From Octopus bimaculoides (taxonomy: Eukaryota), in contig NC_068995.1 of assembly GCF_001194135.2 (NCBI RefSeq), positions 53,353,740 to 53,417,739 on the forward strand: a DNA stretch of 64,000 bases. The letters are read 5' to 3'. A model generated the notes under the pieces. It did no database searches and was not told the origin of the DNA. It worked only from the letters and a program-made list of their open reading frames with translations. Each line of letters opens with the position of its first letter. The stretch's first letter is position 1. Both the position numbers and the translations under genes were made by a program. This document shows, in pieces, positions 1 to 62,700 of this stretch.

Positions 1-1940
1 TATATATATATATATCATCATCATCATCATCGTTTAACGTCCGCTTTCCATGCTAGCATGGGTTGGACGATTTGACTGAGGACTGGTGAAACCGGATGGC
101 AACACCAGGCTCCAATCTAATTTGGCAGAGTTTCTACAGCTGGATGCCCTTCCTAACGCCAACCACTCAGAGAGTGTAGTGGGTGCTTTTACGTGTCACC
201 CGCACGACACAGTGGAACCATGGTTTATGAATTTTATTCTTTCCTGAAGGCTGTCTGCTATCCAAAATGCTCATAAACTGAAACTATTTTTCACATGGGG
301 GAAATTCAAGAAAATGCACAATGAATTCAAACATGGATGTGCACTGAGCAAAAAAGCCAGACATTAACTAATGCTCCCCTGTTAATACCCCCAGTTCATC
401 ATCGACTCTTGTTGCCAGCTTGCATGTCCATTACTCGAGACACTGTTCATCACCCGAAATGTTTCATGTTAAAAAAATTGTTCGTAAACTGATTTCTTTA
501 TTATGAGAGGTGTTTGAAAACTGAGGTGCCACAGTGTACACACACACACACACACACGTTTATGAGAGGCTTCTTTCAGTTTCCTTCTACTAAATTTACT
601 CACGAGGCTTTGATCAACTGCGGCTATAACAGAAGACACATTGTCCAAAATGGGAGCCATGCAGTGGGATTGAACTCCAAGCCATATACTTGGGAGGTGA
701 ACTTCTCAACCAGACAGACATGCTGGTTCTTAGATGTACTCATGAAATAAGCAACACTGTACGTGATTATCATTTATCAGCATAAATATAGATATGACGT
801 TATTAGGCTATTTTCAACCGTGATACACGGCCAAATGACTGAACCAGTCGACAGGGTCGCTATCAGTCATCCTCCTCCAAGCACTTAATAACTTTAGATA
901 ACCTCACACATTGAGATGTTACGTATTGTTATCTGAAAGGTGTGTGAGTTTATTATAGAAATTATGAAATAGGTTTAAATTGAACAACTTTACTGATCAG
1001 AATGCAAGACCTAGTTATCTTAAATTCTGTTGAAAAGTAGAAGTGCGAAATAGGACAGATGAGAACTCTGTCCTGGATATGAAATGCTTCGACACAGCCA
1101 TTTTGGCACGGCTTATTTGGCATTGCTGTTCGATGCTGACTTATTTGACATCAGACATTTTAATGTTTCTCTCGTTTTCTCTCTCTCTCTCTCTCTCTGT
1201 TTATGTGTGTGAGCAGATTTCCCTTTATGTGTATGAGGAAAGGGAAAATGCTTTATGTCTGTCATTTACAATTAATAATTAATAAATTGTAATGTCCATC
1301 TCTGTTGGGTGGTTGGTGTTAGGAAGGGCATCCAGCTGTAAAATCCAAGCCAAGACAAGACACAGAAGTCTGCTGCAGTCTCCTGTCTGGCCAACTCCTG
1401 TCAAACTGTTCAACCCAAAGCAAACATTAAACAATGATGATGATGATGATAGTGATCGTTTTCTCCTTCACTCTATCTCTTTCTCTCCTAGTATCTCTCT
1501 CTCTCTCTCCCTCTTGCTCTGTGTTAATGTGCTTATATGTATCAGCAAATTTCTCTATGATTATGAGGAGAGACAAATGTTTGTGTTGTGTTCAATGTCA
1601 CAGTCTCTGTCTCTCTCTGTATGTGTATATTTCTGCATGCGCATATGTGTGTGTGTGTGTTTGCCTCCAGTGCCAAAAAGTACTGCCACCAAAACCATCT
1701 GAATGTCCAGTCATCTGCACCAAATCATCTCATTCTAATCTGGGACAAGGGACCAAACTGTGATTCTTCCTCTCAAACTGGTTCATATTTTAGTGGCACT
1801 TTATCTGTCTTTACGTTCTGAGTTCAAATTCCACCAACGGCAACTTTACCTTTCATCTTGTTCTGGTCAATAAGTACAAGGTGAGCTCTGGAGTTGGTGC
1901 AATCAACTCAATGTCTACCCTAAAATTATTAGTGTTGTTG

Positions 1941-3316: not shown

Positions 3317-3521
3317 NNNNNNNNNNTGCAGAACTAATGTGGGGTATAGAATATGGAATATACAATATATAATATAATATACAATATATAATATAAAATA
3401 AAATAAAAATGGATGGCACCATGAAATAAAGTATTGAATGTAGATGAAATATTGAGTGTTCAATATAAAGGATCAAATATATAAATATATAAATATAAAT
3501 ATAAATATATATATATAAAAA

Positions 3522-4858: not shown

Positions 4859-5027
4859 TCTGTGGCCATAGTATGGAGCAGTCCACTACCACCATGGGGA
4901 CCTGTATCACACAGTCAATGATGAGGTGTTTCTATCCAGCTTACCAGACTATGAAACAGCAGTACCATCGTCTCAGACGAACTTCTCACCTGCAATTCAA
5001 CAAACAAGATTTTGATAATATGTGCGA
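4859..5027 (+). CDS. Gene 1 exon A1 (VCGHSMEQ...QDFDNMCE), phase 1 to 2
   Basis: Acceptor ttcttgcag at 4857-58; donor GA|gtaagt at 5028; 169 nt. Confidence 0.85.
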
Positions 5028-7308
5028 GTAAGTTTTTCATCTTTTAATCTTTTCAATTAATTCTTTAATCATATACGCAAAAAAAAAATCAAATCAAATG
5101 AAAACAAACAACAAAAAACAATAAATTGAAATAATTGTAATAATTTTTGAGAAAAAAAAAATATATATTTGTTTTAATATCCGGGTTAATAAACATGGTG
5201 GTGAGCTAGCAGAATTGTTAGCGTGCCGGTTGAAACGCTTGGCAGAATTTCATCTGTCTTTACGTTCTGAGTTCAAATTCCACCAGGGTCGACTTTACAT
5301 ATCATTCTTCAGGGGTTGATAAAATAAATACCAGTTGGGTACTGGAGTTGATGTAATTGACTCACCCAATAATTTCTGGCCTTGTGCCAAAATTTGAAAC
5401 CAATATTATGACTTTGCCTTTCATCTTTTTGGAGTCAATAAATTAAGTACCTGTTGTGTACTGGGGGTTGACCTAATCAATTGGCATCTTCCGCCAAAAT
5501 CTTGGGCTTTGTGTCTAGAGTAGAGAAGAATATATATATATAAATATATATTTATATATATGGAGTGGCTGTGTGGTAAGAAGCTTGCTTACCAACCACA
5601 TGGTCCTTGGTTCAGTCCCACTGCATGGCAACTTGGGCAAGTGTCTTCTACTATAGCCCCAAACCAACCAAACCTTGTGAGTGGATTTGGTAGACAGAAA
5701 CTGAAAGAAACCCATCGTGCATGTGTGTGTGTTTGTCCCTACCATTGCTTGACAACCAATGTTGGTGTGCTTACGTTCCCCATAACTTAGCCTCATTCGC
5801 CATACTCATCAAACCTCTCGCCTACCGACTACCACTTTTTCAAGTATCTCGATAACTTCCTGCGTGAGAAATGCTTCAAAAACCAAGACGATGCCAAACA
5901 CGCCTTCAATGACTTCATTGCCACCAGAATGCAGGATTTTGATGCTACTGGCATAAATAAACTTGTTTCGCATTGGCAAAGGTGTGTTGATTCTGATAGT
6001 GTTTATTTCAAGTAATAAAGTTTTGCTTGAGCCGAGATATGTACATCTGAATTTAAGGGTTAAAAACAGCAAGAACTTTCTTGACAAACTAATAATTTCA
6101 AAATTAAAACTACCATTCAAAGCATTAAAAGAATATTTTTGCAATGTCTTAATGTAGGGTCTTGCAGACTGATATTGTATATTGTATGGACAAAATTGAA
6201 GATTCTTGTGGTCAGACAACAAGACAGAGTGCTTTGAAACAGCTGAACACAAGCTTTCATTACTTCTGCTACAATGGATGGAAAGGTATTTATGCCAATG
6301 AGCAAGATCTCAAGATTTGCTTTTTTCAGTCTTATCTAACTAATCCATACTTGCTGTCTAATAACTTTGATGATATGTGCATCCACACACACACACACGT
6401 GGTCTGCATCAGCAAGACGAATATTATAAATTAAAAATGATACAAAGAGTCCAATCAACCTGCAGTGAAGAATGGAAAATCCGACGTTTCAGACAGAGTC
6501 CCTCTTCAGAGAAAAGTTGAAAGGAGAGAAATTAATGAGAGACAGTAAAGTCTTTTTTTAACGATGCTGTGTCCCATTAATTCCTCTCCTTTCAACTTTT
6601 ATTTGAAGAATTCTATCCAAAACTATGTATGTTTATGAAATCTAAGTATTTACCATAGCTTCCTGACAAGATGTGATTGTCTTAGTAAGTTTTCATTTTG
6701 AGAAAGAATGAGTAGGAAATACTGACAATATGAAATTTTATAAGAGAAGTTTTAACAATGTAAAGAATTTTTCCCAGTCAGTTTCTCTCTCTCTTTCTTT
6801 CTCTCTTTCTTCCTCTCCCTTTCCCTTACATCCGCTTCCCTACCTCTCTCTCTCTCTCTCTTGTTCTTTCTTCCATAAAGCAAATGACATTTATTTTAAC
6901 CAATTGACATTTTGATCCCAAAGGTCTCAGACACAAAAATGTAACTTCAGGCCAGAAAACAAAATGAATTTAAACAACAGACAGCAAAGCCAAGAATTTT
7001 CTTTTTTGCCAATCAACTGTTACAGATGAATGATTCTGGAGACCTTGAAGCACAATTGGGAAGCTTACTCATCAAGGTGATATAAATAATGAAGATATAT
7101 ACACAAACCCTCAATCAATGAATATAAATTATCCAGGGACTTTATTGGTGCAAGTGTGACCATGTGATGAGATATTTGCTTCCCAACCACGTGGTTCTGG
7201 GTTCAGTCCTGTTATGTGGCACAAGTGTCGTCTACTATATCCCTGGGTTGACCGAAGCCTAGTGAATGAATTTGGTAGATGGAAACTGAAAGATGCCCAT
7301 GGTGTGTG

Positions 7309-7622: not shown

Positions 7623-10600
7623 TTCTATGTGTTTTTATAGTAGCTTACTGTTATGTTTTTTAATTCCTGTAGTTTTCTCATCTTTAACAATTATGCATGT
7701 CTGTTGCAAGATCTGTAATCAGGTAAGAATGAGACTCTTGTTGATTGGTGTGGAATACTCTGTAACAAAACAAAAAAAAAACAAAACAAAAAAAGTGTAA
7801 ATTAACAACAAGATATAAAATGGAGTTTAATGATCCAATTCATTAATCAATCCATCATTCCATCAACAGTTCTGATAAATAATTGAATATAATAATATTG
7901 AATCATGATGTTTTTTTTGATAACCATGTTTATATATATTTTTTTTTTTTACAATTATTGTCTTCAACACCTGTTTCCTTCCTGATACTTTGGAGTTTTT
8001 GTGTGTGGTGCACACATCCACATGTTGTTGACTTGCCAATTTCCCCTTCTCACAGTACCGAGTCAACAACTTGTGGATGTGTACAAAACAGACTCATTGC
8101 AACATATGAAGTGGTAGGAACCAAAAGAGAGGAAACAAAGAATTTTCCTCACCCAAAAAAAAAAAAAAAAAAGCGTACAGGTACAGATTCAGAGGAAGAA
8201 TTTCATTTGCTAAACTTGATTTTGATTATTGTTTACATAATTAAATAAACAAAAATCTTGTATATCAATATTTATTGTATAATAAAGCTGGCAGAATTGT
8301 TAGCAAGCTGGCAGAATTGTTAGCAAGCTGACAGAATTGTTAGCAAGCTGGCAGAATTGTTAGTAAGCTGGCAGAATTGTTAGTAAACTGGCAGAATTGT
8401 TAATGAGCTGACAGAATTGTTAGTAAACTGGCAGAATTGTTAGCAAGCTGGCAGAATTGTTAGCAAAACCCTGCCTTTGTTTCAATTAATTTTGAAAATA
8501 ATTAAGAATTTAATAAAGCAAAATTGCCATTTTTAAATTGATATTTGGAACATAAATTAACAAGAAACTTTTATGAAATGTTTAAATTTACATCACTTTA
8601 AAGCATGAAATTTGCATCATAAAACCAAGGAAGTTCTCAGGCAGGTTGGTCACGAAAGGGTTAAACCTGATTCAGTTTCTCATTCCCAGTTTTGCTATTC
8701 AGTCCTGTGTTTTCTCATCCATTTTTCTATTGTCTGGTTTGTTTTCTTCCTTTTGTTTGCTGCGTTTGTTCTGTCTGTTTTCTTTTTCTTTTTTTCTATT
8801 CTACTCTCCTCACCAAACTTGTAGATTACCAGAAATTCCAGAAATGCTTCAAATCAGACAAGAACAATGTCCAAGAGAAAATAAGGCACTGCTACACAAC
8901 TTCAGATCTGAATCACAGAAATTTCTTTGAACATGAGTATGAATATTTCAATCGTGACTTCTTTTATAACTATCCAAACTCTTACAATTGGCAGGGATAT
9001 TTTAAGGACGATCCTAACAGGCAAGGTGATGGTCAAGTTCATGACCAAGGTCAAGGCTATCAGTCTGACCAAGCATTGCAACCTGATGCGCCTTTCTCTG
9101 AGACTGGCGCAGGTGGACTCCAAGCTGATGCAACTGCTCCTACTAAAACGGAAACTGCCACTTCTGCGGCCAAAAAGGATGGTATTAAAAATGAAAGCAA
9201 CAATGATGATGATGATGATGTCAACATGAACGAGTGGCTGCGTAACTTTGGAAATGGCTTTGACCAAAATCGCAACTATGATCACAACCGCAACCGTGAC
9301 TACTGGGCGAACAAATATGACAGGCATAACAGACACAACTATTACGATAACAATCGCCGTAACAACTACGATGGCAACAGACGTTGGTATGACAACAGTT
9401 ACTATGGCAATGACGATAACTATTACAACAAGAAATACAACCATGATGGCTGGCAGAATAGTCACTCACAAAGATCAGACCTTTTCAGCAATGACTACTA
9501 TAATCAGAACTTCGAGCGACTGAACCGAGAAACTCGAGAAGAACCTGGCAAGAAACAACCCCAGCCTGAAGCGGAGAAACTAAAACCTGACATCCATGGC
9601 AGTTATGAACAAGACAAGGACTGGGGGAATAACAGGAATACACCATTCTATAATAACTACTATCGGAACAACTATTATGATCGGAACAGGTTCTATGACC
9701 AAAACTATGATTATGATGGTCGTAACTACGGTTACAATTACTATAATTCCAATGAACGTAAACCAGATTACTGGGCGTTTTATAACTATGATGTAAGATA
9801 TCGCACAGACATTTGCAGGTAAGTGTTTCTTATACATTCTGTTCTTTAGTTACTATTATCATTAGATGCAGACATGGCTGTGTGCTTGAGAAGCTCTCTT
9901 TGCAACCAAGTGGGCTCAGGTTCAGTTCCACTGCATGGTACCTTGTGAAAGTGTCTTCTACTGTAGCCGTAGGCTCAACAATGCCTTGTGGGTGAATTTG
10001 ATAGACAGAAACTATATGGAAGCCTGTCATGTATATATATATATCAAATAAAGGTGCTGTAAAATACAACACACAATCATGGCATTTGTTGCAAAACACT
10101 GATGAGGTGAAATGCAACATTATATAACGATTCAAAAACTGTTGTGTAATTATGACAGTAATTTGTTGAAATGTGTGTATGGTATATAAAACATTGAATA
10201 GTACCTATGTTCTATATGTTATTGTGTGTGTGTGTGTGTTTGTATATACTCCCTTCACCTCTTGATACTCAATGTTGGTTTGTTTACATCAACATAACTT
10301 AGCAGTTTGACAAAAGTGATTCATAAAATAAGTACTACACTTTGAAAAATAAATACTGGGGGTCGTCAATTTGTTTGACTTGACCCTTTAAGGTCAAGCA
10401 ATGGCTGCTGTCCGGTGACTGAAACAAGTAAAGAAAAAAAAAAAAATTAATTCATTTAACAATTTATAATTCCAAAGTTTCATTTTTGTTTTCTTTTACC
10501 TTTATTTACAGCGGAATGTCAAAGATGAGAGACTGCTCTCATGAAATGAAGAAAGTCTGCAACCAGGAATCAGATAATTTTATGTATAATCTTAACAACA

Positions 10601-11208
10601 TGATCTATCAATTTGGACGTCTTTTTATGAACTGTGATATGTCAGCTGAATCTGCAGGTACATAAGTGTGTAATTCCAATCATAAAAACTCTAATTTTAG
10701 ACACAAACCTACATCTTCTGAAGACATATTCTCTCAAAATTTATAAATTCTTATGATGTCAACACCGTACAGTTCTCGCTGGTAAGAATAAAGTTTCTAA
10801 AATGGATAGAAAAATTCAAAGGATTGCTTTGGTACAATGGGAGTATGCTTGTCATGTTTACAAGAGATGTAAGTTTGAGTCCCATAAGCAGCCTACGAAT
10901 TTTTTATTATCAAAAAGGGGTTTTTAACCCAATATTTATGCACTATTATTCATAGTGTTACTGCTTCAAGATCCACCATTTCAAAAAAAAAAAAATGAAG
11001 AATAATTTCATATTCTTGTGAAGCATATATATGTATATATATGCACATATATATATATGTATATCACGAAACTCTCAGACCCTGAGTCACTCTGTTGCTT
11101 CTGCTAAATATTAATAAAAATATACATATACTCATATTTTGAGTTCTATTTTTCCTCTTCGCATCACCATACCGGTACATAAAAACATACATACATATAT
11201 AAATATAC

Positions 11209-11257
<49 letters not shown>

Positions 11258-13540
11258 CAAAATAAGCAACAGGATATCAAGTAGTAATGCAGTACGACCG
11301 TTTCAAGTGATACCAATATCTACCATGACTATAATTTTACTTGCCTTGACGAGTCTTCTTCTTATATAATTATATATGTATATATTCATACATTCATTCG
11401 TGCACATATATGCATACATATAACAGATATAACATGTATATGTGTATGTATTTATATATATGTATGTATGCATGTATGTATATATATGTATGAATGTATG
11501 TATATATGTATGTACGTACGTACGTATGTATATATATGTATGAATGTATGTATGTATGTATGTATGTATGTGTGTATGTATATATGCATGTATGTATGTG
11601 CAGTTTTGTATGTTTTATGTATGTATTCTCATGCATATAGTTGCATATCTAGACATGCTCATATATATTTAAATGATAAACTTCTGGAAAGTTTTACAGA
11701 CTTTTACAGTTCCAGTGATGGATTGGATCTGTAGTCTTCGAATCAGCTTTCTCCTTTCTGGTTTTGGACGATTTGACTAAGGCTCCAATAAGTGTGTGTG
11801 TATGTGTACTACATTTTGTTTTTTACTGATAATCTATTTTCAATGTTATCTGTGTGTTATGACTTTTCAACCTTATCATGACACATGTCAATGAATGAAC
11901 AATGCTTCTGCATGTGACAACAACAAAAAAAAAAAAACCAGAAAAAAAAACCCTCTGTGGTCTTGGTTTGTCANNNNNNNNNNAAAAAAAAAAAAAAAAA
12001 AAACAGAAAAAAAAACCCTCTGTGGTCTTGGTTTGTCAGAAATTTGACTCATTCTCTACAGCATCCGACTCTCATAGCCTGGTGGGACTCCACAAATTCG
12101 AATCCCCCATTTTATGCAAATGTAATTATTTTCTTGCATTTATTTTAATTTTTGTACTTTTCTCAAATTACAAAGTGGTTTTAAATGGTTCTCCTGGACT
12201 AGTTGGGTTTTATAAAAAAACACAACTTTTTTACCTAAGTTTTAACATCATCTCCTTCGAAGTAGTCACCTTACACAGCAAAACACCAGTCTCGGCCTTC
12301 CTGTGACTTTTGGAATCTGACCTGGAAGTTGTTTGGTCTAAGCAACTAGAGGACCTTCTGCTTTGGATTGATAATGGTATTAAAACAGCGACCTTTGAGC
12401 TGTGTTTTCCTCTGGGGGAAGAGATGGAAATCCACAGGTGGTAAATCTGGTGATTAGGGCAGGTGGAGAAGCAATACCATGTTGTTTTTGGTGAAAAACA
12501 CATAAATGGTGACATAGCTTGGTGACAGGGTAGGTAGTCGTCATGAAGAATCCAGTTCTTTGTGCTCCACAGATCCGGATGCTTTTGCTAAATGTTCTCC
12601 CTCAAATGCTTCAAAACATCATTGATTGTTCTCTGATGATATTCATGCACAAACTGATGAATTTTCTCCACATTTCCAGGGGTGACACTTGTAGCAAGTC
12701 TTCCAGATCACTCATCACCTTCCAGGGATGCTCTTCCGCTTTTGAAGTGCTCATGCCACTCAAAACATTGCAGACAACTCATAGTCTCATTGAGGTAGAT
12801 TTGTTAATTTGCCAGATGCCAATCTTTGTTTCAGTGCAAGGTAATATTTTGTCATGGTCAGACCTGATTTCACAGAAAACAGGTCACAAGTAACACCACA
12901 TGTATGACAATGACACTAATCTTATATCTGTTACATGATGTCAAGATAAGGTGATAAAAATACGCATACATGTACATGCACACAGCTACACAGACACACA
13001 CACATACACACCACACACACACACGTGTGTGCACAGACACAGACACATACATGCAGAGACACACACACACATACAAACCATAAAAAATCAGCAGATATGA
13101 GAGCTGACTATATTTATTTAACCACTTGTCATCCTTAGGATTACAGCTGTTCCACAGCTTCCATTGTGTAGCAATAATTTCAGTGTATAATAAATTATTT
13201 CATATGTCTGCACTACTATGGATGCTACACATTATTGAATACAACTGAAAATTTATAAATCAGAGCAGATGAAGGAAGCTAGCTCAACAGATCACTAGAA
13301 TATCATAGTTATTTGACAAATGGTTATATTTTCCTCATGAAATATTTTCATCGATTGGATCTCCTGGATTTCAGCAGCATAGAACTCTACATTATGCTCC
13401 TCTGTACTGGATCACTCTGTGGTCTGTTAACCAGGTCTGTCAGAGGAGCTTTCTGTGACAGCCACATGATTCTATAGATTCATATATTACACTGCAAATT
13501 AATTCATACAATATATATATATATATATATATACATACAT

Positions 13541-13583: not shown

Positions 13584-16500
13584 GTGTACTGTTCCGTGAT
13601 GGTAAGATCAGCAAAATACTCTTTCTGGTGAGCGATAAATATTATTTAATAAACACAGTATATATATTTTTACAAGCTACTAATAGTTTCAGGAGATGAA
13701 AACAGCTCAGACAGCATTTAATAACACATCTGGTGCCATCATGCAATTCTCAGGCTCTGCCCACATGGCATAACAAGCTAAAACAGGATGAAAGAACAAG
13801 AGAAAATACATGAAAAGGTGAGAAGAAAGTAGATGAAAAAGGTGGAAGGATGAAAACACAAATGTTTTCAACCTTCCACTTTTTCACCCTGATACCCCAT
13901 CACCACCATCTTTTTTCCCTTTCCATCTGGGATAGCCATGTACCTCTTCTACAGCAAGACACCTCTTCGTATCCCTCAATCACATTTTATTTTCTTAATG
14001 CCCAGCACAAGGACATTTATCTCAATATTACCCCTCTCCCCCATCACACTCAAGGGGTCTTGTCTTGTAAGTTACTTGGTGACCTTATTAGTGCCAGCGC
14101 CATATGAAAAGGCACCTGATAATATGCTGAAAAGCGGTTGGCATTCGGAAGGGCATTAAGCCATGGGAACCATACCAAAGTAGAGACATTGGAATTCAAT
14201 GCAATCCTCTGGATCATCAAATCTCATCAAACAATCCAACTTATGCCAGCATGGAAGATGGGCATTAAATGGTGATGATGGTGATGGAGATGACGACGAC
14301 GAAGACAAAGACGACAACGAAGACAGAAATAAAATTTTATATAACAGAAACAAACAAATAATGTCCCAGAATATGCCAGAGAACCCTGAACCTTACCACT
14401 CAGAAAGGACTGGAATATCTTCCACAAACTGTGACCATCCACTGCTCTGCACGTATGCCTTCTCAGCAACAACTCCAATAAGCAGTAAAGAAGCATCAGT
14501 ATGTCAGCCAAACTATAATGATCATCTATTTATCATATTTAATGTACATACAATTTTGGTAGGCAAGTTACTGCCCTATTTGTCCTGAAATAACATCCCA
14601 AATACATGTGCTAAACACAGCACATCCATATGAGATGTTATTTCAGGACAAATATCGCAGTAGCCGGCATACCAGCAATATGTATACATTAGATATGATA
14701 CATAGATGTCTATTTTGATTTAATTCTGCCTCATTTGCATGTACTGGATCCAAATTATATTTGTCGATTTCACCCTTTTTTCATAAACTTTAAAAAGACT
14801 TTCATCTGAAGACAAGATATCTTTGTTTTGTGTTTCTCAGAGCCTTCACCGGAAGCTGAGGCAGTTGCTAAAAGTGAAACAGCCTATTGTGACCACCGCA
14901 AAGCAATTACTTGCATCCAGCCGTTCCAGAACTGGTTTGGCTCTTTCAAAGACAATGAATTCAAGATATTCTCTGACTATGACACATTGAGGAATATGTG
15001 TGGGTAAGTTGTCTCTGATTGTGAAGAACAAAAATAATAACAAAAAAATATTTACTATTAGGCACAGGAGTGGCTGTGTGGTAAGTAGCTTGCTTACCAA
15101 CCACACGGTTCCGGGTCCATGGCACCCTGGGCAAGTGTCTTCTACTGTAGCCTCGGGCCGATCACAGCCTTGTGAGTGGATTTGGTAGATGAAAACTGAA
15201 AGAAGCCCATTGTATATGTGTGTGTGTGTGTCTGTGTTTGTCCATCCACTCTGCCTTGTTGCAATCAGTTTTGAAAATAATAAAGAATTTAATCAAATAA
15301 CTTAGTCATTCTCAAGCTACTCTTTGGAAGCTAAATTAACATGAAATTTTGGAGGAAGATTTTTAAATTTAAATCACTTAAAAACAAGAAGTAGCAGTAA
15401 CAGTAATGATAATGGGGTGGCGATGGGTGATGATAATGATGAATATGATTTTGGTGATAGTGATGATGATTTTNNNNNNNNNNNNNNNNNNNNNNNNNNN
15501 NNNNNNNNNNNNNNNNNNNNNNNNNNNNNNNNNNNNNNNNNNNNNNNNNNNNNNNNNNNNNNNNNNNNNNNNNNNNNNNNNNNNNNNNNNNNNNNNNNNN
15601 NNNNNNNNNNNNNNNNNNNNNNNNNNNNNNNNNNNNNNNNNNNNNNNNNNNNNNNNNNNNNNNNNNNNNNNNNNNNNNNNNNNNNNNNNNNNNNNNNNNN
15701 NNNNNNNNNNNNNNNNNNNNNNNNNNNNNNNNNNNNNNNNNNNNNNNNNNNNNNNNNNNNNNNNNNNNNNNNNNNNNNNNNNNNNNNNNNNNNNNNNNNN
15801 NNNNNNNNNNNNNNNNNNNNNAGATATACTAGAAATAAGATAATTTTGAAAACTGAAGAGAAATTCTTTGATTTTTTTTTTTTTTAACTCTTTAACATTT
15901 AGATTACTTTGTCAAAAGTGATGTTTATTTATTCTCATTTTTAAAATTCAATCATGTATTATCTTGTAGCTTTGAAATTTCAAGGATGTAATTGTTTATG
16001 TTTAGATTAACATTGTAGGGTAGGTGTAAGAGGCTGGATCTGGCTAGGTTCAACATAAAACAGGTAGAATATTTTGGCTGGGTATAACCAGTTTAAATAA
16101 TATTCTGTAACAAATTTTTTTTTTTTTCTTTTATAACTTTTTTTAAAAAATTATTCAGATCTGACCAACCACCATGAATGCTGGAGCAGCCACAGTGCCA
16201 ACGTCACTTACAGGCTTTGCAAAGAACTGATGCAAAGCAAGATGGAATATTATTATGACAGACATAAGGGAGACGCTATGCGTTATATCTGCGGGTAAAT
16301 CTCTTTTGCAAAATAACAAGTTAAAATATTCCATAATCCATTGTTAGAAATTCAAATTAAAATATCATTTATCCAAATTAAAAAAATTCCACATTCCACA
16401 TAGTTCTTCAAGAGGAACATGCTTCAACATATTATATTTAAATATCATAAATAAAACAAAGAACTCGTAGATCCATGTATTATTGTCTAGACATCTAAGT

Positions 16501-16810: not shown

Positions 16811-17456
16811 TGGTTGACATCTTGTGATGACTGTAGACAAGCATCACTGTCAAATAAGTGGTGTTATGACGTTGCTCTCAGTTCCAATCTTCCATGGGAA
16901 ACATGTCTGGCCGTGGGAAATATTGATTGGAGACAGGAGAGGGATGGCAAGAAGAAGAAGAACGGAACCCAACTGTATAAAACCTGCCTCAACAAAATCC
17001 TGTCTGACCCATGCAAGCATGGCAAATTTGATATTAAAACAATGGTGATGGTGGTGGTGGTGGTGATGATGTGTCTCCCAGTTTTTAAAAGACTTACATG
17101 ATATCCCTTCATAACAGAAGAGGCAAATGAAAGGGCTGGTATTATGAAGAGCCCCCAACACTGCCTCAAAACAATTACGTCCTGCTCATACCAGCACAGA
17201 AGATCATATAAGGAAAAATGATGATGATGACGACAACGGCGACGACGACGACGATGATGATGACGATGATGATATATGTATTTTTTATTTGTTTTTTGTT
17301 TTTTTTCTTTTAGACTTATGTCTGAATTTCAACATTGTGTGACAATGATAGATTGTGAAGAAGATGCTAGAAATTTCATGGGGAATTTTTTGAGCGAAAC
17401 CATGGAACCCATCAAAGAATTCTACCAATGCAATGAGTCAAGGTACAAAGACGCTG
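4859..17456 (+). CDS. Partial multi-exon gene: uncharacterised Cys-patterned modular protein (4 modules) with a large Asn/Tyr-rich insert; join(4859-5027,6158-6285,8825-9818,10512-10657,14841-15003,[exon missing in gap],16159-16294,17314-17456)
   Basis: Seven AG/GT-bounded exons were translated by hand. Phases alternate 1-2-1-2 without stops, except at 15003/16159 where an N-gap intervenes. All four A exons end in M/I-C-(split codon). The Cys spacing recalls DUF19/CPG4/DUF1397-type helical extracellular modules (from memory, not searched). Secretion is inferred from the paired Cys; no signal-peptide exon was found. Confidence 0.85.
5198..5515 (+). mobile_element. Second SINE-like family (ggtgagctggcagaattgttagc...tctgagttcaaattc...gtcgactttgcctttcatc)
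   Basis: Related copies at about 1760-1930, 18270-18400, 23760-23850, 27900-28030 and 30545-30650(-). Confidence 0.75.
5562..5790 (+). mobile_element. tRNA-derived SINE, major family of the window
   Basis: A box tggctgtgtggtaag, B box ggttcagtcc, body gggcaagtgtcttctactatagc...gagtggatttggtagacagaaactgaaagaa. Confidence 0.85.
5800..6094 (+). mobile_element. mariner transposase 3' fragment plus right TIR
   Basis: 5800-6015 translates [14 protein letters not shown]...[21 protein letters not shown] (YSPDLAPxDYHLF motif and C-terminus); ends caagaactttcttgacaaactaata. Confidence 0.85.
6158..6285 (+). CDS. Gene 1 exon B1 ([17 protein letters not shown]...[10 protein letters not shown]), phase 2 to 1
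   Basis: Acceptor aatgtag at 6156-57; donor G|gtattt at 6286; 128 nt; in frame with A1 and A2. Confidence 0.8.
6480..6512 (-). ncRNA. Minimal type I hammerhead-like motif (third family) in a Penelope-like inverted repeat
   Basis: Minus strand reads UCU-CUGAAGA-GGGACUCUGUCU-GAAA-CGU-C-GGA: intact core, GUC triplet, weak helices with G-U pairs. 6503-6545 is an imperfect inverted repeat of 6567-6610. Confidence 0.55.
8285..8464. repeat. Minisatellite, 9 x 20 nt (aagctggcagaattgttagc)
   Basis: Nine contiguous units with few substitutions and no spacers; the unit matches the head of the second SINE-like family. Confidence 0.95.
8825..9818 (+). CDS. Gene 1 exon A2 (DYQKFQKC...YRTDICS) with Asn/Tyr/Asp/Arg-rich low-complexity insert
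   Basis: 994-nt open exon inside ORF 8692..9822; acceptor ttgtag at 8823-24; donor AG|gtaagt at 9819. Confidence 0.9.
10512..10657 (+). CDS. Gene 1 exon B2 ([16 protein letters not shown]...[11 protein letters not shown]), phase 2 to 1
   Basis: Acceptor tttatttacag at 10510-11; donor G|gtacat at 10658; 146 nt; three Cys spaced as in B1 and B4. Confidence 0.85.
12170..12860 (-). mobile_element. Degenerate, internally deleted mariner element
   Basis: Minus-strand fragments [52 protein letters not shown] and GDYFEGD. Confidence 0.8.
14577..14654. repeat. Perfect 21-bp inverted repeat enclosing a second 7-bp hairpin
   Basis: tatttgtcctgaaataacatc (14577-14597) / gatgttatttcaggacaaata (14634-14654); inner atgtgct-aaacac-agcacat. 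Confidence 0.9.
14841..15003 (+). CDS. Gene 1 exon A3 ([25 protein letters not shown]...LRNMCG), phase 1 to 2
   Basis: Acceptor tgtttctcag at 14839-40; donor GG|gtaagt at 15004; 163 nt. Confidence 0.85.
15474..15821. other. Assembly gap (348 N) predicted to hide gene 1 exon B3
   Basis: Flanking exons end in phase 2 and start in phase 1; no suitable exon in the sequenced part; other B exons are 128-146 nt. Confidence 0.7.
16159..16294 (+). CDS. Gene 1 exon A4 ([21 protein letters not shown]...AMRYICG), phase 1 to 2
   Basis: Acceptor ttattcag at 16157-58; donor GG|gtaaat at 16295; 136 nt; first Cys at the same codon position as in A2. Confidence 0.85.
17314..17456 (+). CDS. Gene 1 exon B4 ([14 protein letters not shown]...[13 protein letters not shown]), phase 2 to 1
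   Basis: Long T tract then AG at 17312-13; donor G|gtaagt at 17457; 143 nt. Further downstream exon(s) not identified. Confidence 0.85.
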
Positions 17457-20175: not shown

Positions 20176-21452
20176 GTTGTCAGTGCCACTGGACTGGCTC
20201 CTGTGCAGGTGGCACGTAAAAAAACACCCCTTGAGCGTGGCTGTTGCCAGTACTGCCTAACTGGTCCCCAAGCCAGTGGCACGTGAAAGCACCCACTACA
20301 CTCTTTGATTGTATGGAATAAAAGGAAATAAATAGAGAGAGAATGAAAGAAACCCGTGTTGAGTTCAGTCGTCCATCATGGCGATTCTTTATTCTTTTAC
20401 TTGCTTCAGTCATTTGACTATGGCCATGCTGGAGCACCACCTTGAAGGATTTTAGTCAAACAATCGACCCCAGGATGTAATTCTGTAGCCTAGTACTTAG
20501 TCTATCAGTCTCTTTTGCTGAACCGCTAAGTTACGGGGAGGTAAACACTAACACCAGTTGACAAGCAGTGATGGGAGGTCAAACACAAACACAATGACAC
20601 ACACACATGGATATATACATATAAATATATATACGACAGGCTTCTTTCAGTTTCCATCTATCACATCCGTTCACAAGGCTTTGGTCAACCCGAGGCTATG
20701 GTAGAAGACACTTGTCCAAGGTGCCATGCAGTAGGACTGAACCCAGAACCATGTGGGTGAGAAGCAAGTTTCTTACCACACAGATATGCCTGTGCTATAT
20801 ATATATATATATGTCTATGGGTGTGTGTGTGAGTATGTACGTGTATACATGTGTACATACATACACACACACACAAACATACATAAATAAACATGCACAT
20901 ACATATGTAGAATTATAACATTTTGCATTTAAATGCCAGAATAGAAAGAAACCAATGCAAGCAAGACATGCCAACCATTTCAGTTGATCTTTATCAAGAG
21001 AATTAGGAAATAAAATATCAGGAATGTCAATGTACCATAAAGATAAGAAATATATGTTGGGCTTCAATCAGCATTTTTAATTTTTCCTCTCTATTAATGT
21101 TGTTAAAAAAAACCTTGTAGTCCTTTCTCGGTTCATTAACCTATTCGTTACTGTATTTCTGGCCAAACATTGTTTATTTGTTTTAATTAATACTGAAGAT
21201 AGTCAAGAAACTGGAGGAATTTGAGTAAAATGAAAATCTTTCTGCATTTGTGTAGGAATGTCATTGTTTCTGACTGAATAATTTTCATGCTTGCATGGGT
21301 CAGAATAGAATTTGCTGCAGCAGATATTCTACGACCAGATGTCACTGGAAACAAACAAACTTGCTTGTATGATGATGATGATGATGAGGATGCTCATTTA
21401 TAATCATCATGTAATGTCCAGATAAGAGTACACAAAAGCATATACACATACA

Positions 21453-21718: not shown

Positions 21719-22417
21719 NNNNNNNNNNNNNNNNNNNNNNNNNNNNNNNNNNNNNNNNNNNNNNNNNNNNNNNNNNNNNNNNNNNNNNNNNNNNNNNNNN
21801 NNNNNNNNNNNNNNNNNNNNNNNNNNNNNNNNNNNNNNNNNNNNNNNNNNNNNNNNNNNNNNNNNNNNNNNNNNNNNNNNNNNNNNNNNNNNNNNNNNNN
21901 NNNNNNNNNNNNNNNNNNNNNNNNNNNNNNNNATATATCTATATATGTGTGTGTGTGTGAGTGTATATATATATATATATATATGTAGTGGCACAGGAAC
22001 CAATCAGGTGGAATTGGTATCAACAACACTTGAATGGTGCCTTTTATGTAGCACTGGCATTGTGTCAGATGGCACAGATAATCACACCTCATGGAATATT
22101 GCTTATTACAGATGGAATCAACTTTAGGGCACTACTCAGAAAATGATCAATTATTTTATCTCTTCAAATCCTAGAGATAATATTTATTTGGTTTATTGAA
22201 TTGTTTTATTGATTAGGAAATGATCTGCATGGCTGAAAGTAGATTCATTAATGAGCTGAGATTACACAGTGACAATTGATTTCACACTTTAATTAAAACA
22301 AATGTCTGCCACATCATGATGCATAATTAATAATGCTTTCTGTTAATTATAGTATCTCTATAATTGTATTGAAAAACTTAGATGATTTAATAATAACGAC
22401 AACAATGTATAAGTGAT

Positions 22418-22568
22418 GGGCGTGGCTCTGTGGTAAGAAGCTTGCTTCCCAACCACATGGTTCTGAGTTCAGTACCACTGTTGGCACCTTGAGCAAGTGT
22501 TCTCTTGGGTGACCAAAGCCTTGTGAGTAGATTTGGTAGACAGAAACTGAATATATGTATATATCTAA

Positions 22569-22845: not shown

Positions 22846-24433
22846 AAAAAAAGAATATATATATTTAATTAATAAAACACATGTCAGAAAAGAACGACAC
22901 TCTAAAGAACAGAACAGTAATTATTACAACAATAATATCTTGGACATAGAGTTACCAAAGGTTTCACATCCACAAAGCCAAAGCCTTGTGGACAGCTTGT
23001 CCGATTCTGTACAAGGACAAAAAATTTTTAAACTTTCTACGTCAAGATTTCTAANNNNNNNNNNNNNNNNNNNNNNNNNNNNNNNNNNNNNNNNNNNNNN
23101 NNNNNNNNNNNNNNNNNNNNNNNNNNNNNNNNNNNNNNNNNNNNNNNNNNNNNNNNNNNNNNNNNNNNNNNNNNNNNNNNNNNNNNNNNNNNNNNNNNNN
23201 NNNNNNNNNNNNNNNNNNNNNNNNNNNNNNNNNNNNNNNNNNNNNNNNNNNNNNNNNNNNNNNNNNNNNNNNNNNNNNNNNNNNNNNNNNNNNNNNNNNN
23301 NNNNNNNNNNNNNNNNNNNNNNNNNNNNNNNNNNNNNNNNNNNNNNNNNNNNNNNNNNNNNNNNNNNNNNNNNNNNNNNNNNNNNNNNNNNNNNNNNNNN
23401 NNNNNNNNNNNNNNNNNNNNNNNNNNNNNNNNNNNNNNNNNNNNNNNNNNNNNNNNNNNNNNNNNNNNNNNNNNNNNNNNNNNNNNNNNNNNNNNNNNNN
23501 NNNNNNNNNNNNNNNNNNNNNNNNNNNNNNNNNNNNNNNNNNNNNNNNNNNNNNNNNNNNNNNNNNNNNNNNNNNNNNNNNNNNNNNNNNNNNNNNNNNN
23601 NNNNNNNNNNNNNNNNNNNNNNNNNNNNNNNNNNNNNNNNNNNNNNNNNNNNNNNNNNNNNNNNNNNNNNNNNNNNNNNNNNNNNNNNNNNNNNNNNNNN
23701 NNNNNNNNNNNNNNNNNNNNNNNNNNNNNNNNNNNNNNNNNNNNNNNNNNNNNNNNNNNNCTGCAGGCTGGCATTGGACCAAATGCTTAGTGGCATCTGT
23801 TCCAACTCTTTGGGTTCTGAGCTCAAATTCCACCAGGGTCAACTTTGAACAGGATAAACTATCCATATTTTGCAGAAAAATCTGTCATCGGTCAACCATG
23901 TGACTCGAACTCACTTTCCTGTGATTATGTGTCAAGTGATTTACCATTAAGCTAAACTGCCCCAACGACAAATTCTTCAGCAAATGTAGGATATATAAAT
24001 CTAGTTTTATAAGACATTATTGTAAGTTACATTGAAAGTCAACAAATTTGCTTAGAAGCGTTGATATGTATCTTTCAATACATCTCAATGCTTCTAAAGC
24101 AAACTTTGGTCGTTATATCAGAACTGACCTGGGTTAGACAACAACATCAATCATCACATTAATTAGATTGCATATTTGTCATTAACTTGAAATGACTTGT
24201 TTTCTGTATCATTTTTCTGTCTCTTCCAGTTAACCACTTAATTAGTTCAATCAATCAAATCAACACAAAATAGAAATTACTAAATAACATTGGAGGCATT
24301 ATTATATTAGATGCATTTAACCAAATCAACAGTCACATTTTTGCACACCTCTGTTGCAGTTTGACATTGTTTTAATAAAAACTGTTGCTATTAAATAGCA
24401 ATAATTAATTTTGTGCATATGCAAATAATCATG

Positions 24434-34575: not shown

Positions 34576-35062
34576 TCTTCTACTTCCTCCCCTTGTTTCT
34601 CCCTCTTCCTTACCCCCCCCCCCCTGGTCACATGCTTCCGGTCACTAATCCTTTTCTTCCTTGGCTATCGCCGAGCAAACACGCGAACTTACTTTGTCCC
34701 GACTTTCAGTTCGTGCCTCACAGCGTTCATATACACATAATTTTTCACGTCTGGCCGCATAGCCTTTTTTCTTTTCGTTTGTTTTCCTGTCTTGTTTTTT
34801 GTCCGCCACTACATTCCTCCATGGCACAGGTTTAATTTGTGTATACAAATTTAATTTGCGGTCCATGGGAAGAGCCGTTTTAACGATNNNNNNNNNNNNN
34901 NNNNNNNNNNNNNNNNNNNNNNNNNNNNNNNNNNNNNNNNNNNNNNNNNNNNNNNNNNNNNNNNNNNNNNNNNNNNNNNNNNNNNNNNNNNNNNNNNNNN
35001 NNNNNNNNNNNNNNNNNNNNNNNNNNNNNNNNNNNNNNNNNNNNNNNNNNNNNNNNNNNNNN

Positions 35063-41189: not shown

Positions 41190-41600
41190 TGGTGATTGTC
41201 CATTCCTTATACAGAGTTTGACCACCTTCTGTACCTACACCTTAGCAACATCATGGCTTCTGATGTGGCTTTTTAACCCAGACAATGTTCTGAAAAGGTA
41301 CCCACATAGATTGCATATCCGATTTGGACCATCAGTACCTGCAGATAAGTTCTGATCTTTGTGGATCTTAAAATGTCTTTTGAGGCCTCCGTTGGATTTG
41401 CAAACCTTCTGGCATACACTGCATTGAAAGGTGTGCACAGACATAGAGGCAGAATAGTTGGTGGAGGTTCGTTTTCCATGGGTTCGCAGATGAGATTGGA
41501 GGCCTGCCAAAGAGAGGCATGTTCTGTCACAGACTGTGCACACACAATCATAGCTTTAATTGAGGGGATTCCTGCAGATGCAAGGACATCTGTGTTTGGA
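41190..41600 (-). mobile_element. Probable 3' end of an RTE-like LINE carrying three C2H2 zinc fingers (ORF 41235-41543)
   Basis: Three CxxC-x12-H-x3-H fingers with GLxSHxRxH-type signature; stop followed by a short tail and (TATG)n; in-frame stop just upstream and no convincing splice acceptor. Confidence 0.6.
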
Positions 41601-47906: not shown

Positions 47907-48003
47907 GTGTGTTTGTTGTTGTTGATGTTTTCACTTTATAGACAGACAGATTGTAATATCGATATTCTTTCGCTTATGTTTCAGTGGTAGCCACGCTGAA
48001 AAG

Positions 48004-48235
48004 ATGTCCAGCGAAGTGAATAACTCCGATACCCCCTGCGCCGGCCTAGACGAATGGCCTGGTCAGATGATACATCAGGCAGCCATCTACAACAACAGTG
48101 AGTTGATGCAGTGTCTACTGGAAGGAGACGAGTTGGCAAATGTTAACCAATTAGATAGCAGTGGTCGGACAGCTGTCTATACTGCAGTGACAAATAACAG
48201 TGTTGATTGTCTCAAATGGCTCATACATTATGGAG
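48004..48235 (+). CDS. LRRK1-like: LRRK exon, N-terminal ankyrin repeats (MSSEVNNSD...LKWLIHYG)
   Basis: ATG at 48004; acceptor tgtttcag at 47983-84; donor G|gtaaat at 48236. The frame is also open from 47986, so an N-terminal extension from an upstream exon is possible. Confidence 0.85.
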
Positions 48236-48472
48236 GTAAATAATGTCCAGCAACTTTGCTGCTTAGCTTTCCATTTTTTTTTTATATTTATTACTTTTGT
48301 GTTTTGGTTTCCATGTTTTCCTTTTCTCAATTTTCTTGCTACAGTCTGTGTGACCTGACAACTTAACTCATTAGATAATTAATTCTCTCATTATTGAAAT
48401 TTAGTTTTGCCTCTCTTTCAAGTTCTCCCCATTGAATAGATATAGATCATAGTAAGCATATACATACATATC

Positions 48473-59709: not shown

Positions 59710-62700
59710 GGTTTGCTTTGTTAGTGAAGATTTACAGATAGGAATACCTATGTCTGCTGCAGGCTTCCTGATACCTGATGAGTCCAATTTGGGAGAAATG
59801 AGCATCCCTGCAGAAGCTGCATGGGAATGCAGGTAATCAGGGTTGGCTGCAGCATCCTTGTTTTTCCTTCTTTTTCACTTGTCTAAAGAGATGGTCTGAG
59901 AGCAGGTAAAGGCCACCAGCATCAAAGTAACTCTGCTAAAGATGTGTCTATGCTGGGCAGGACATGTCACTGGGATGGAAGATCATCGACTTCACAAAAT
60001 CACCCTGTATGGTGAAGTCACCCCAAAATTCTATTAAAGTGAATATTGTTTTTGTTTATTTGTAGGGGATCAACATCTTCGTGGAGGCACAGTGGCACAC
60101 CACCATTTACTTCTTACATACAAGACTTGAATACTTGTGTTCATCGTCAGCACCGAATTTTGGTGAATTTGCAGACATTGAATTTACACGCTAATCGTCT
60201 TTCATCCTTGAACTTCATTCATCCTGTTAATACATCTGCTGACTCTTGCCATTCACGGAATTCTGTTGGAACCGAAGGCTCTTTCCGAAGTGTAAGAATT
60301 ATTTTACCCTTTTCTTTTTCTCCTTTTTTTTGTTTGTTTGGTGTATTGTTTTCTTCTTTGCCTTTCACCCCCCCCCCCCGATAAAATGAAGTACCAGTCA
60401 ACCACTGGAGTTGATGGTATCGACTAACTTTACGTCTCCCAAAACTGCCATCCTTGTGTCTAAATTAGAAACAATTGTTGTTGTTGTTGTTGTCTTTGCA
60501 CAGCTTCTAACGCTGGAGATGAACTATGGTGTCAGCTGTTCACTACCAGTGAACTAAGGTAACACCTCTTATTTTTCGAGCACCTTCTGGAGTATTCGAG
60601 CGGTTCCAAGCAGTGCTGTTTTCTGCAAGTGCTCCACCCTTATTGCAGACCCTATTTGTTCCACGTACTTCTCGAGATTTTTGATCACTGTTCCTAGGGC
60701 TCCGACATTTATTGGTACTACTGCTACCTTTTCCATCGACCACAACTTCTTAACCTCCTAAGCTAACCTGTCATATCTCTCAACTTATCTTTCTTCCTTA
60801 TCGCATACCTTGTTGTCAGATGGGCATACTATATCTATGATCCAGCATCGTTTGTTTTCTTTCTCAATTAAGACTATGTCCATCTTCGTATTCTCTATCA
60901 CATGGTCGCACTGAATCATAAAATCCCATAGGATCTTTGCATTTCTATTTTCAACGATGCCTTCAGGTTTGTGGCCGTACCAATTTTATTATTATTATTA
61001 TTACTCTTGTTTTTTTTTTCAGTCTGCAACATCTGGAATAGGTCCACCCCCAGTGGTAATATTCCCAAACTTGACCATGTTGGATGTGAGTTTTAATCGA
61101 ATCAACAAAGTTGCTGGTGACATTGGTTTACTGTCTCAACTGAAAATGCTAAATCTTAGTGACAATGATATACGAGAGGTACGTCAGTCGGTTTTTTTTC
61201 CCCCTTTCCATGTTTTCTCATGCATCCCACATGTTTGATCAGGCTTTAGGATGCTAGCATTCCAATATAACAGGTGCATGTTGTTATTTAGCCCCAGGTC
61301 AGCTGATCCAGTGGACTTATAATCAGTCATATCACCCTCGACTATCCCCATTTTTAATGTTTTTGCATGATTGCAAAGCAAGCTTCTTAATTCCACAAAT
61401 ATGCCTCTGTCCATATTATATTAGCACCCACTTAACCATATATACTAGAATATAATATGAAACTGAATATAATGTAACCCGCACATTCATTTACACCTGA
61501 AACTAGGTAAAATATTTCTGATCCCTTTTTTTTTTCCTTCTTAAAACCAAGTATAATGATATTCCATGAATTTGAGCCTGATCTTTTGCATTTAATTAAT
61601 ATAATTTAGATTATGTCATGCTGATGATTTCTAAAAAGAATGAAATAGTGCTGCACAGACAAATAACCGTCAAATGTAAATAATGTAAATGATTCTCATA
61701 TAATACTCATGTAATTACAATATTAGTTTCAAACTGATAAGAAATAGAAATTTAAAAAAATGTATTTCCTTTCTTTCCTTTTTATTTTTTTATTTTTATT
61801 TCTTTATTTTGACAGCTTCCTGCTGAAATGGGTTTATTGAAAAGATTGTGGAAGCTTGATCTGGAAAACTGTCCCTTAGAAGGGCCTGTGCACGACTTGC
61901 TTGCAATGAATCGACCTGCTGTTGAGATTACAGGCTTTCTTAATTCAGTGCTTGAAGCGTAAGAATTTTACCATTTTTCCCTCCTTATTTTCCTCTTCTC
62001 AGTGGAGGTTTGTGGCCTAGGGGTTAGGACATGGCATTCACAATTGTAAAATCATAGTTTCAATTCCCAGACTGGGCGGTGTTTTGTGTTCTTGAGCAAG
62101 ACACTTCATTTCACATTACTCCAGTCCACTCAGTTGCAAAATGAGTTCCAGCAATAGCTGGAAATTTAATCCTGCAACAGAATGGTTTTCCATTGAGATG
62201 AGAGTGTTATAATCTCAGCCATTTATTTGCTATGGAAACCTAGTTAGCCACACATCTCGTTTGTATCTTTTGCCAATCGTCCCTTTTATTATTTCCAATT
62301 CCTACACGGCTTTTTTTTTTTCTTTTCACATTTGATGTCTGTTTGTTTTGCAGGGAATGTGAATACAACTGCTTAAATCTGATGCTTGTTGGCACTCATA
62401 ATGTTGGTAAAACATCTTTACTGTTGCAACTGAGGAAACTCTGCAAAATACCCAAAGACAGTCGACCAAAAGTATGTCCAAACTTGCTGTGTTGTTTCAG
62501 GGTTATGTGTCTTGTTTGTAAGGCAATGGTGTTGGACGAGTGTGTTGTGTGGGGTGGGGAGAGATATAAATAAGTAGATAGATAGATAGATAGAGAGAGA
62601 GAGAAAGAAAGAAAGATTAAGTATCTAATGGTATTTTCTTTATTTGTTTCACATTTTCATATTTGAATCTTACTTGACATTATTATTATTATTATTATTA

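Follow-up and report, generated by a model that had tools for sequence, protein, structure and literature searches.

The subject of this study is a stretch of 64,000 nucleotides from Octopus bimaculoides (contig NC_068995.1, positions 53,353,740 to 53,417,739 of the forward strand; hereafter the window) and, within it, a single large exon, A2, at 8825..9818 on the + strand. A2 proved to belong to a multi-exon gene whose product is a secreted protein of ~700 residues; of the coding exons of this gene that were located in the window, it is the third. Very probably this protein is built of two cysteine-rich units, with a conserved disordered region of some 300 residues lodged between two cysteines of the first. 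That the disordered region acts through a material or association mechanism is a more tentative proposal, and we regard as evenly balanced the combined reading, according to which a secreted matrix or structural protein uses its disordered Tyr/Arg/Asn/Asp region for multivalent association.

The large exon and the gene to which it belongs

Exon A2 comprises 994 nt, passes from phase 1 to phase 2 and holds 330 full codons without a stop. Its edges read ctcaccaaacttgtag|ATTACC ... TTGCAG|gtaagt, with the first two bases completing a codon and the last two beginning the next; the acceptor is strong (long pyrimidine tract, cttgtag|AT), and the donor has the consensus form CAG|gtaagt. The open frame around the exon extends over 376 codons. 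When the same DNA was subjected to 2000 mononucleotide shuffles, the longest frame was 157 codons and the mean was 72. The encoded residues include N (15.8 %), Y (12.1 %), D (11.5 %), R (7.9 %), W (2.1 %) and M (0.3 %). An earlier note on this DNA (the original prediction) had described an exon with an N/Y/D/R/W-rich product here, and canonical splice sites, 330 open codons and a frame beyond the reach of shuffles show that exon and composition are real; the aromatic/Asn blocks and aromatic-poor spacers that it quoted are present in A2 as given, and the KK, RR and RK pairs that it mentioned number six. An Rfam scan of the window gave zero matches.

Codon usage in A2 is mixed (both synonymous codons are used for N, Y and D, and all six for R), and the only tandem DNA repeat is a (GAT)5 coding DDDDD, accompanied otherwise by weak 18-nt echoes (Tandem Repeats Finder and repeat scans). 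On both counts, a microsatellite or tandem-repeat origin of the long insert within the exon was ruled out, and the mixed codons together with the lack of tandem repetition indicate that the bias in composition was selected at the protein level.

To place the exon in a gene, the + strand was scanned for open AG...GT intervals. This yielded four phase 1-to-2 exons with three Cys each that end in (I/M)C (4859..5027, 8825..9818, 14841..15003 and 16159..16294) and, interleaved with them, phase 2-to-1 exons that also have three Cys each (6158..6285, 10512..10657 and 17314..17456). With canonical sites, all seven join in frame, and the chain is colinear with the O. vulgaris protein P0013, with Argonauta GAB1605186.1 and with transcripts of Sepia pharaonis:

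4859..5027 (+), exon E0: phase 1 to 2, first sub-module of unit 1, C-x7-C-x31-C, ends ..NMC, canonical AG/GT
6158..6285 (+), exon B1: phase 2 to 1, C-x7-C-x19-C; P0013 residues 57-100; best Pfam CPG4 stretch
8825..9818 (+), exon A2: two N-terminal Cys, 307-residue disordered region, terminal ..DIC; P0013 residues 101-442, 87 %
10512..10657 (+), exon B2: phase 2 to 1, C-x7-C-x24-C, closes unit 1; P0013 residues 438-490, 94 %
14841..15003 (+), exon E3: phase 1 to 2, first sub-module of unit 2, C-x7-C-x28-C, ends ..NMC
15474..15821, assembly gap: 348-nt run of N where exon B3 is expected (orthologues: TMQQ..FPC..C..LC..)
16159..16294 (+), exon A4: unit 2 counterpart of A2, Cys codons 7, 20 and 44, C-x12-C-x23-C, ends ..YIC
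17314..17456 (+), exon B4: phase 2 to 1, C-x5-C-x29-C, last exon found

Exon B3 was not found in the window; it is present in P0002, P0003 and P0013, and the gap at 15474-15821 most likely hides it as the sixth coding exon. A short terminal exon (in orthologues YMKS.SWYDYLPPEMA..) was likewise not found in the window, of which 3925 bases (6 %) are N in ten gap runs, and it may sit in another of these gaps.

The only database model at this locus, UniProt A0A0L8GA73 ('uncharacterized', Octopus bimaculoides), joins 4894..5027 to 8919..9822 (+) and is identical to the A2 translation from NFFEHEY to DICR. It takes as its start a Met within E0, the exon to which P0013 residues 2-58 map with 96 % identity. 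Its second exon begins after an internal AG (8917-8918) and reads past the 9818 donor to a TAA at 9820-9822; moreover, it omits exon 6158..6285, loses both N-terminal Cys of A2 and leaves the downstream exons all unannotated. Orthologues and Sepia transcripts use the 8825 acceptor and the 9818 donor, and the model was rejected as mis-spliced. Two other arrangements were also rejected. Mutually exclusive use of the four phase 1-to-2 exons (length mod 3 = 1) is at odds with orthologues that hold all of them in series along with the interleaved 2-to-1 exons. As for several small genes in tandem, which would each need a signal-peptide exon, the scan found no such exons and the orthologues are one long protein.

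Word-indexed protein searches, with the exon or with the spliced insert-free protein, returned only the mis-modelled entry A0A0L8GA73. With the latter as query, an exhaustive HMMER search recovered three representative clusters, to which a profile search added the O. vulgaris protein:

Argonauta hians GAB1605186.1: orthologue, 682 aa (HMMER search)
Logan contigs of 2.4-2.8 kb: orthologue cluster, 657-662 aa (HMMER search)
Two ERR runs (ERR14857104, ERR12370320; L002/L003): distant homologue, 396-421 aa (HMMER search)
Octopus vulgaris 'hypothetical predicted protein' P0013: orthologue, 705 aa (profile search)

For P0013, identity is 83 % by BLAST and 92 % in the alignment. SRR3011300, the source of contig L001, is whole-animal RNA-seq of Sepia pharaonis (PMC5541922). 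All orthologues follow the rebuilt exon chain in order, and they also supply the missing B3 and the short terminal exon. When Sepia mRNA was mapped to the cuttlefish-lineage genomic contig L008, the large exon formed one block, and introns of ~4.8 and ~4.5 kb preceded the two exons after it; in addition, the cuttlefish-lineage genomic gene calls P0006, P0008 and P0009 end exactly at the octopus boundaries (..PT|DYQKFQ... and ..TIC|). Taken together, these data indicate that the cuttlefish exon is transcribed and spliced at both ends, without internal splicing. Internal splicing of the large exon, an outcome envisaged in the original prediction, was not seen, the Sepia mRNA carrying the exon uninterrupted.

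The distant homologue is 37 % identical and has a single 12-Cys unit with a 220-residue Tyr/His/Pro/Gly-rich insert (..GHMYPFPYGYPYGPYLPPHG..). Because it is equidistant from the octopods and Sepia, it is either a paralogue or an outgroup sequence. No literature on the family was found under A0A0L8GA73, the CPG4 domain, Asn/Tyr-rich cephalopod proteins or the run numbers other than SRR3011300. In databases the family appears only as 'hypothetical' or 'uncharacterized', and it has been seen so far only in cephalopods.

Cysteine units and the disordered region within the first of them

The protein consists of two tandem units of four exons each, and twelve Cys are invariant in each unit (MAFFT alignment of 7 sequences, with the unit 1 insert trimmed). 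When the two units were compared by hhalign, they aligned over 167 columns with the 12 Cys colinear (E=9e-6, probability 83 %), and 8825..9818 was set opposite 16159..16294. The homology of A2 and A4 that had been claimed therefore holds at the level of the units, with the same exon phases; compared directly, A2 and A4 have nil pairwise similarity (z=0.4), and A2 is closer to 14841..15003 (z=3.8), with which it has NW.G.FKD and F..YD....C in common. A deeper duplication, into four 6-Cys half-units, found no support from hhalign (E=0.2, probability 0.3 %), the short alignment keeping three Cys in register.

Pfam CPG4 (PF15481) matches all four full proteins in consistent register, with E=1.6e-6, 7.8e-6, 9e-4 and 0.02. 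The full-protein scores are 29.0 (O. vulgaris P0013, the best), 26.8, 20.2 and 15.9 bits, and unit 2 alone scores 27.4 bits. The profile also matches all 7 isolated unit sequences (both units, four species), and pieces from unit 1 and unit 2 both put the third Cys of the A-type exon at profile position ~31. We take the units to be probable remote kin of CPG4, an extracellular domain of invertebrates, and not members of it. DUF19 (PF01579) gave one weak match (E=0.039) over exons A4 and B4, covering half of the profile and absent in the other sequences. Profile and sequence searches of the Protein Data Bank (PDB) gave nothing below E=0.1, and Foldseek searches with both AlphaFold 2 (AF2) models nothing meaningful.

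The AF2 model of unit 2, made from 12 alignment rows, has nine helices, a mean pLDDT (predicted local distance difference test) of 76 and a pTM (predicted template modelling score) of 0.62. The conserved Cys and this all-helical model support the view that the Cys flanking the insert belong to a folded module; that they are bonded as disulfides we infer. The three Cys of A2 are at codons 7, 22 and 330 (nt 8845-47, 8890-92 and 9814-16), with 307 residues between the second and the third, and the corresponding interval in A4 is 23 residues, which recovers both spacings of the original prediction. In the AF2 model, the 23-residue segment of unit 2 runs from the last part of helix 96-119 through a turn of four residues into the first part of helix 124-141, which puts the insert site at the loop of model residues 120-123. 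The unit alignment sets NFFEHEYEY of unit 1 opposite ELMQSKMEY of unit 2, and ~280 extra residues then follow before the next aligned stretch, in which 13 residues of unit 1 face 14 of unit 2. The A4 turn itself reads YYYDRH, with a Tyr/Asp/Arg flavour like that of the insert, and this likeness suggests that the insert grew out of that turn.

The long region is arranged in blocks and spacers as follows, islands being marked by their consensus across species:

8893..9813 (+): whole region between Cys22 and Cys330, disordered, Tyr/Asn/Asp/Arg-rich
8917-9006 (+): aromatic block (sequence layout)
9007-9204 (+): spacer 1, acidic Ala/Pro/Thr, ~65 residues, aromatic-poor
9205-9219 (+): DDDDD acidic run that ends spacer 1
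9220-9255 (+): conserved 12-residue island, VNM.EW.RNFGN
9256-9516 (+): N/Y/D/R block (sequence layout)
9508-9540 (+): conserved 11-residue island, (F/Y)ERLN.ET.E
9517-9624 (+): spacer 2, short, charged
9625-9813 (+): N/Y/D/R (aromatic) block (sequence layout)

Over the whole of this region, the full-length AF2 model has a pLDDT of ~20 (P0013 residues 130-435). The charged fraction of the insert is 0.296 and well mixed, the net charge is -0.04 per residue, and aromatics make up 19.5 %; Tyr accounts for 12.7 %, Arg for 8.1 %, Met for 0.3 %, I+L+V+M for 4.6 % and N+Q for 21.8 %. This makes the region a conserved, disordered polyampholyte rich in aromatics. Aromatic residues are clustered relative to shuffles with z=3.0 in O. 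bimaculoides and 0.9-1.8 in the orthologues. Tyr-sulfation-type context was considered and set aside, as 20 of the 39 Tyr stand beside an acidic residue and 20.4 were expected in shuffles.

Spacing from Cys2 to Cys3 (the residues between them, plus one) and identity to O. bimaculoides were compared across species:

O. bimaculoides: spacing 308
O. vulgaris: spacing 318, insert identity 89 %, module identity 96 %
Argonauta: spacing 301, insert identity 60 %, module identity 84 %
Sepia: spacing 301, insert identity 39.5 %, module identity 69 %
Distant homologue: spacing 220, insert identity 33.7 %, module identity 38 %

In every species compared, N+Y+D+R dominate the insert and Met stays below 2 %. 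The block-spacer layout, the aromatic profile and the two short islands are kept in Argonauta and Sepia. Spacer 1 is the least conserved part and the aromatic blocks keep their composition; the acidic patch at the end of spacer 1 reads NNDDDDDVN in Octopus, N8DDNDDNND in Argonauta and DSDADADSD in Sepia. A pLDDT of ~20, low identity and conserved length, composition and layout support the disordered block-and-spacer behaviour first proposed for the insert. The recent insertion that the original prediction implied did not hold up, the insert being already 301 residues long in cuttlefish and argonaut; on the sequences compared, its origin lies no later than the last ancestor shared by octopods and cuttlefish, whose lineages parted a few hundred million years ago. 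That a 300-residue region has stayed constant in length, layout and composition since then speaks for a function of the disorder as such. The original prediction was to be refuted by orthologues that share the insert and have a known function; half of this came out, as the orthologues do carry the insert but none has a known function.

Evidence for secretion was obtained from transcripts. In five independent Sepia-type RNA-seq contigs, an in-frame upstream stop is followed by a signal peptide, MSFLIALLACILLATEG|AGEQ..., whose n-region is short, whose hydrophobic core has 12 residues and whose residues at -3 and -1 are small. The N-terminus of the distant homologue (P0010-type transcripts) is hydrophobic as well (MVNRLWTVFPLLVIMAAVAMLTVV...). 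For L001 and L004-L007, the gene caller of the protein collection began at an internal Met (MKNQ...), and the true open reading frame starts 46 codons upstream. These N-termini support the extracellular placement suggested at the outset. Because signal peptides are seen only in the Sepia transcripts, with the hydrophobic distant homologue beside them, we infer secretion in octopus from orthology.

Possible roles of the disordered region

We propose that the disulfide-stabilised helical modules would serve as a stable, possibly ligand-binding anchor, and that the disordered region would act as a multivalent 'sticker' segment through Tyr/Trp-Arg cation-pi and Tyr-Tyr contacts, to which Asn and Asp could add hydrogen bonds or Ca2+ binding. 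In an extracellular material that octopods and cuttlefish share, the protein might then associate with itself or attach to a matrix of polysaccharide or mineral. It is established that Tyr/Arg-rich disordered regions can drive association, as in the reflectins (10.1101/456442).

Several points weigh against this proposal. The self-association that it envisages is read from composition. No signal-peptide exon was found in the O. bimaculoides window; its place may be further upstream or within an assembly gap. The models of O. vulgaris and Argonauta are also without one. Transcript support comes from Sepia (cuttlefish) RNA-seq. The CPG4 scores all fall below the Pfam gathering score (best 29.0 versus 32.7 bits), and a Foldseek search of the PDB with the unit model found no solved relative (best E=1.8, TM <0.3). 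The two helices that flank the insert may pack in one domain or may not. Furthermore, the modules repeat every ~95 residues, equal to the Pfam CPG4 length, and Pfam and exon-based domain boundaries are not distinguishable; the insert could be a linker near the N-terminus of a domain instead of an internal loop. Of the two descriptions, a loop in a module is the better supported.

A bolder form of the proposal, which we consider unlikely, makes the protein an extracellular counterpart to the reflectins, with a secreted, conserved Tyr/Arg/Asn/Asp block-copolymer region of ~300 residues that would condense or coacervate outside the cell. The region would be tied at both ends by a disulfide-locked helical module and thereby displayed as a closed loop, not a free tail, and the protein might build or tune a material peculiar to cephalopods, for example beak, radula, sucker cuticle, statolith or eggcase matrix. 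If true, this would be a new design principle, in which a phase-separating loop is grafted into a folded scaffold.

A folded extracellular module joined to an aromatic low-complexity region is of a familiar kind. What is unfamiliar is the topology, in which a conserved disordered region of ~300 residues is closed off by two Cys of a helical module and a paralogous copy of that module, elsewhere in the protein, is uninterrupted. The gene thereby offers a natural experiment, since the folded unit occurs twice in one protein, with a 23-residue turn in one copy and a region of ~300 residues at the equivalent turn of the other. Should the region drive assembly, it would amount to a secreted counterpart, anchored on a scaffold, of the sticker-and-spacer domains inside cells. 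Reflectins, suckerins and beak proteins, the low-complexity proteins of cephalopods that lead as models for bio-inspired materials, were each discovered via the tissue they build; the present family was found from sequence alone, and the corrected gene model allows existing octopus RNA-seq and proteomics data to be queried again.

Among the rival explanations, the one that fares best is a biomineral or skeletal-matrix protein (of statolith, stylet, cuttlebone or gladius). It amounts to the association proposal narrowed to a defined ligand, and we give it a rather low chance. In this case the acidic run and the Asn/Asp blocks would bind Ca2+, crystal faces or shell-sac chitin, with the aromatics stacking on sugar rings. 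The acidic patch at the end of spacer 1 in all lineages compared is consistent with such a role, as are the secretion indicated by the Sepia signal peptide and the match of W, Y, N, D and R to the residue set of carbohydrate interfaces. It is established that these residues are enriched at protein-carbohydrate interfaces and that Asp-rich low-complexity sequence is typical of mollusc shell-matrix proteins (a summary is also given in 10.1101/2021.07.10.451900). However, with a net charge near zero the insert makes no acidic protein, and Pfam searches detected no known chitin-binding or shell-matrix domain. In addition, a text search of the argonaut eggcase-matrix paper, its supplementary lists aside, brought up no Asn-/Tyr-rich or low-complexity protein.

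It is less probable still that the protein is a glycoprotein or proteoglycan core like C. elegans CPG-4, with a low-complexity region that bears O-glycans or glycosaminoglycan chains. The CPG4-like modules would fit such a role, and in C. elegans CPG-4 the CPG4 domain is joined to a long half of low complexity that carries chondroitin sites (PMC2063922); spacer 1, rich in Thr, Ser, Ala and Pro, has a mucin-like look. But the O. bimaculoides insert contains zero Ser-Gly, the few in Argonauta and Sepia are not conserved in position, and there is one N-x-S/T sequon among 50 Asn. Moreover, the spacer is the least conserved part, whereas the aromatic blocks hold their composition.

A prohormone or peptide precursor, in which cleavage at KK, RR or KR would release Tyr-rich bioactive peptides from the insert, is very improbable, even though a signal peptide is present in the orthologues and six dibasic pairs occur in the O. 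bimaculoides insert. The original prediction had raised cleavage at dibasic sites; none of the six is conserved to Sepia, two are kept in Argonauta, and three remain as KK/RR in O. vulgaris. The insert is also without repeated peptide units or Gly-Lys-Arg amidation signals, and the 24 invariant Cys in large helical modules are unlike the build of a neuropeptide precursor. Finally, a non-functional chance or degenerate low-complexity frame, or an annotation artefact, can be dismissed for nearly all purposes: the sole database model at the locus is mis-spliced and the transcripts examined are not from octopus, but the open frame lies far beyond shuffles with mixed codon usage, its frame, length and boundaries are kept in four species from three lineages of coleoids, and cuttlefish mRNA contains the exon whole.

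Other features of the window and comparison with known systems

A dispersed repeat of ~150-230 nt resembling a short interspersed nuclear element (SINE) is found on both strands with 70-78 % identity, at 9830-10060, directly 3' of the A2 donor site, and in at least nine other places. An isolated open frame with a zinc finger adjoins copies of the repeat and for both reasons is probably transposon-derived. The features beyond the gene are listed here:

562-722 (-), 5566-5702, 15118-15197, 20619-20792 (-), 22423-22548, 25185-25281 and 54058-54164: examples of SINE-like copies (repeat comparison)
41533..41302 (-): open frame with a C2H2 zinc finger
47926..48240 (+): ATG-initiated ankyrin-repeat exon (Pfam Ank_2, E=6e-10), apparently the first coding exon of another gene
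62354..62517 (+): possible P-loop GTPase-like exon (LMLVGTHNVGKTSLL), no Pfam match
2093-2666, 3317-3326, 11974-11983, 21719-21932 and 23055-23760: assembly gaps (runs of N)
29748-30283, 34888-35062, 37289-37858 and 42198-42979: further assembly gaps (runs of N)

Among known systems, CPG4 proteins resemble the octopus protein in having an extracellular Cys-rich repeat with a period of ~94 residues, with colinear profile matches to both units, and CPG-4 itself combines a CPG4 domain with a long low-complexity region. In CPG-4, however, that region is the C-terminal half and is Ser/Gly/acidic, whereas here it lies inside the array between two Cys and is Tyr/Asn/Asp/Arg-rich; the octopus protein also differs in that four sub-modules make two 12-Cys units and in having no conserved Ser-Gly sites. 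DUF19, a nematode extracellular 12-Cys domain, likewise has twelve Cys per unit of ~150-170 residues, but its single sub-threshold match covered half of the profile and was not reproduced in other sequences.

Like prion-like domains of the FUS type, the octopus insert spreads aromatic stickers (19.5 %) through a polar disordered chain, with Arg as partner and 22 % N+Q. Unlike them, the octopus insert is extracellular and 30 % charged, and its aromatics are in blocks and not evenly spaced. The label 'prion-like' used in the original prediction does not apply in the sense of an uncharged Q/N chain, given a charged fraction of 0.296.

Squid beak His-rich proteins and suckerins are secreted, aromatic-rich low-complexity proteins that are thought to coacervate or assemble into extracellular materials. 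Secretion and aromatic richness are common to them and the octopus protein, and the Tyr/His/Pro/Gly-rich insert of P0010 (GHMYPFPYGYPYGPY..) is closer to them in style. They consist, however, of short tandem repeats rich in Gly, His and Ala without a Cys scaffold, whereas the octopus insert is Asn/Asp/Arg-rich, non-repetitive in its DNA and embedded in a folded module.

Reflectins are found in the cytoplasm, and their genes have no introns and encode no Cys modules. The octopus gene, unlike theirs, has 24 conserved Cys, at least 9 exons, a signal peptide in the orthologues, and more aliphatics and lysine. Word-indexed and exhaustive searches gave no sequence homology to reflectins, the matches being cephalopod orthologues only, and a regular-expression search found no reflectin motif, [M/F]D-x5-MD-x5-MD, in the insert. 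Reflectins contain about 15 % Met, 20 % Tyr, 11 % Arg and <1 % aliphatic residues, with the Met-rich reflectin motif (10.1101/456442). The kinship with reflectins that had been raised is thus contradicted by the missing motif, by 0.3 % against about 15 % Met, and by the signal peptide and introns. The likeness is one of layout and chemistry, in that both are cephalopod-restricted, disordered, rich in Tyr, Arg, Asp and Asn, poor in aliphatics and arranged like block copolymers, and by this analogy the association chemistry of the insert (cation-pi and pi-pi) is plausibly the same as that of the reflectins.

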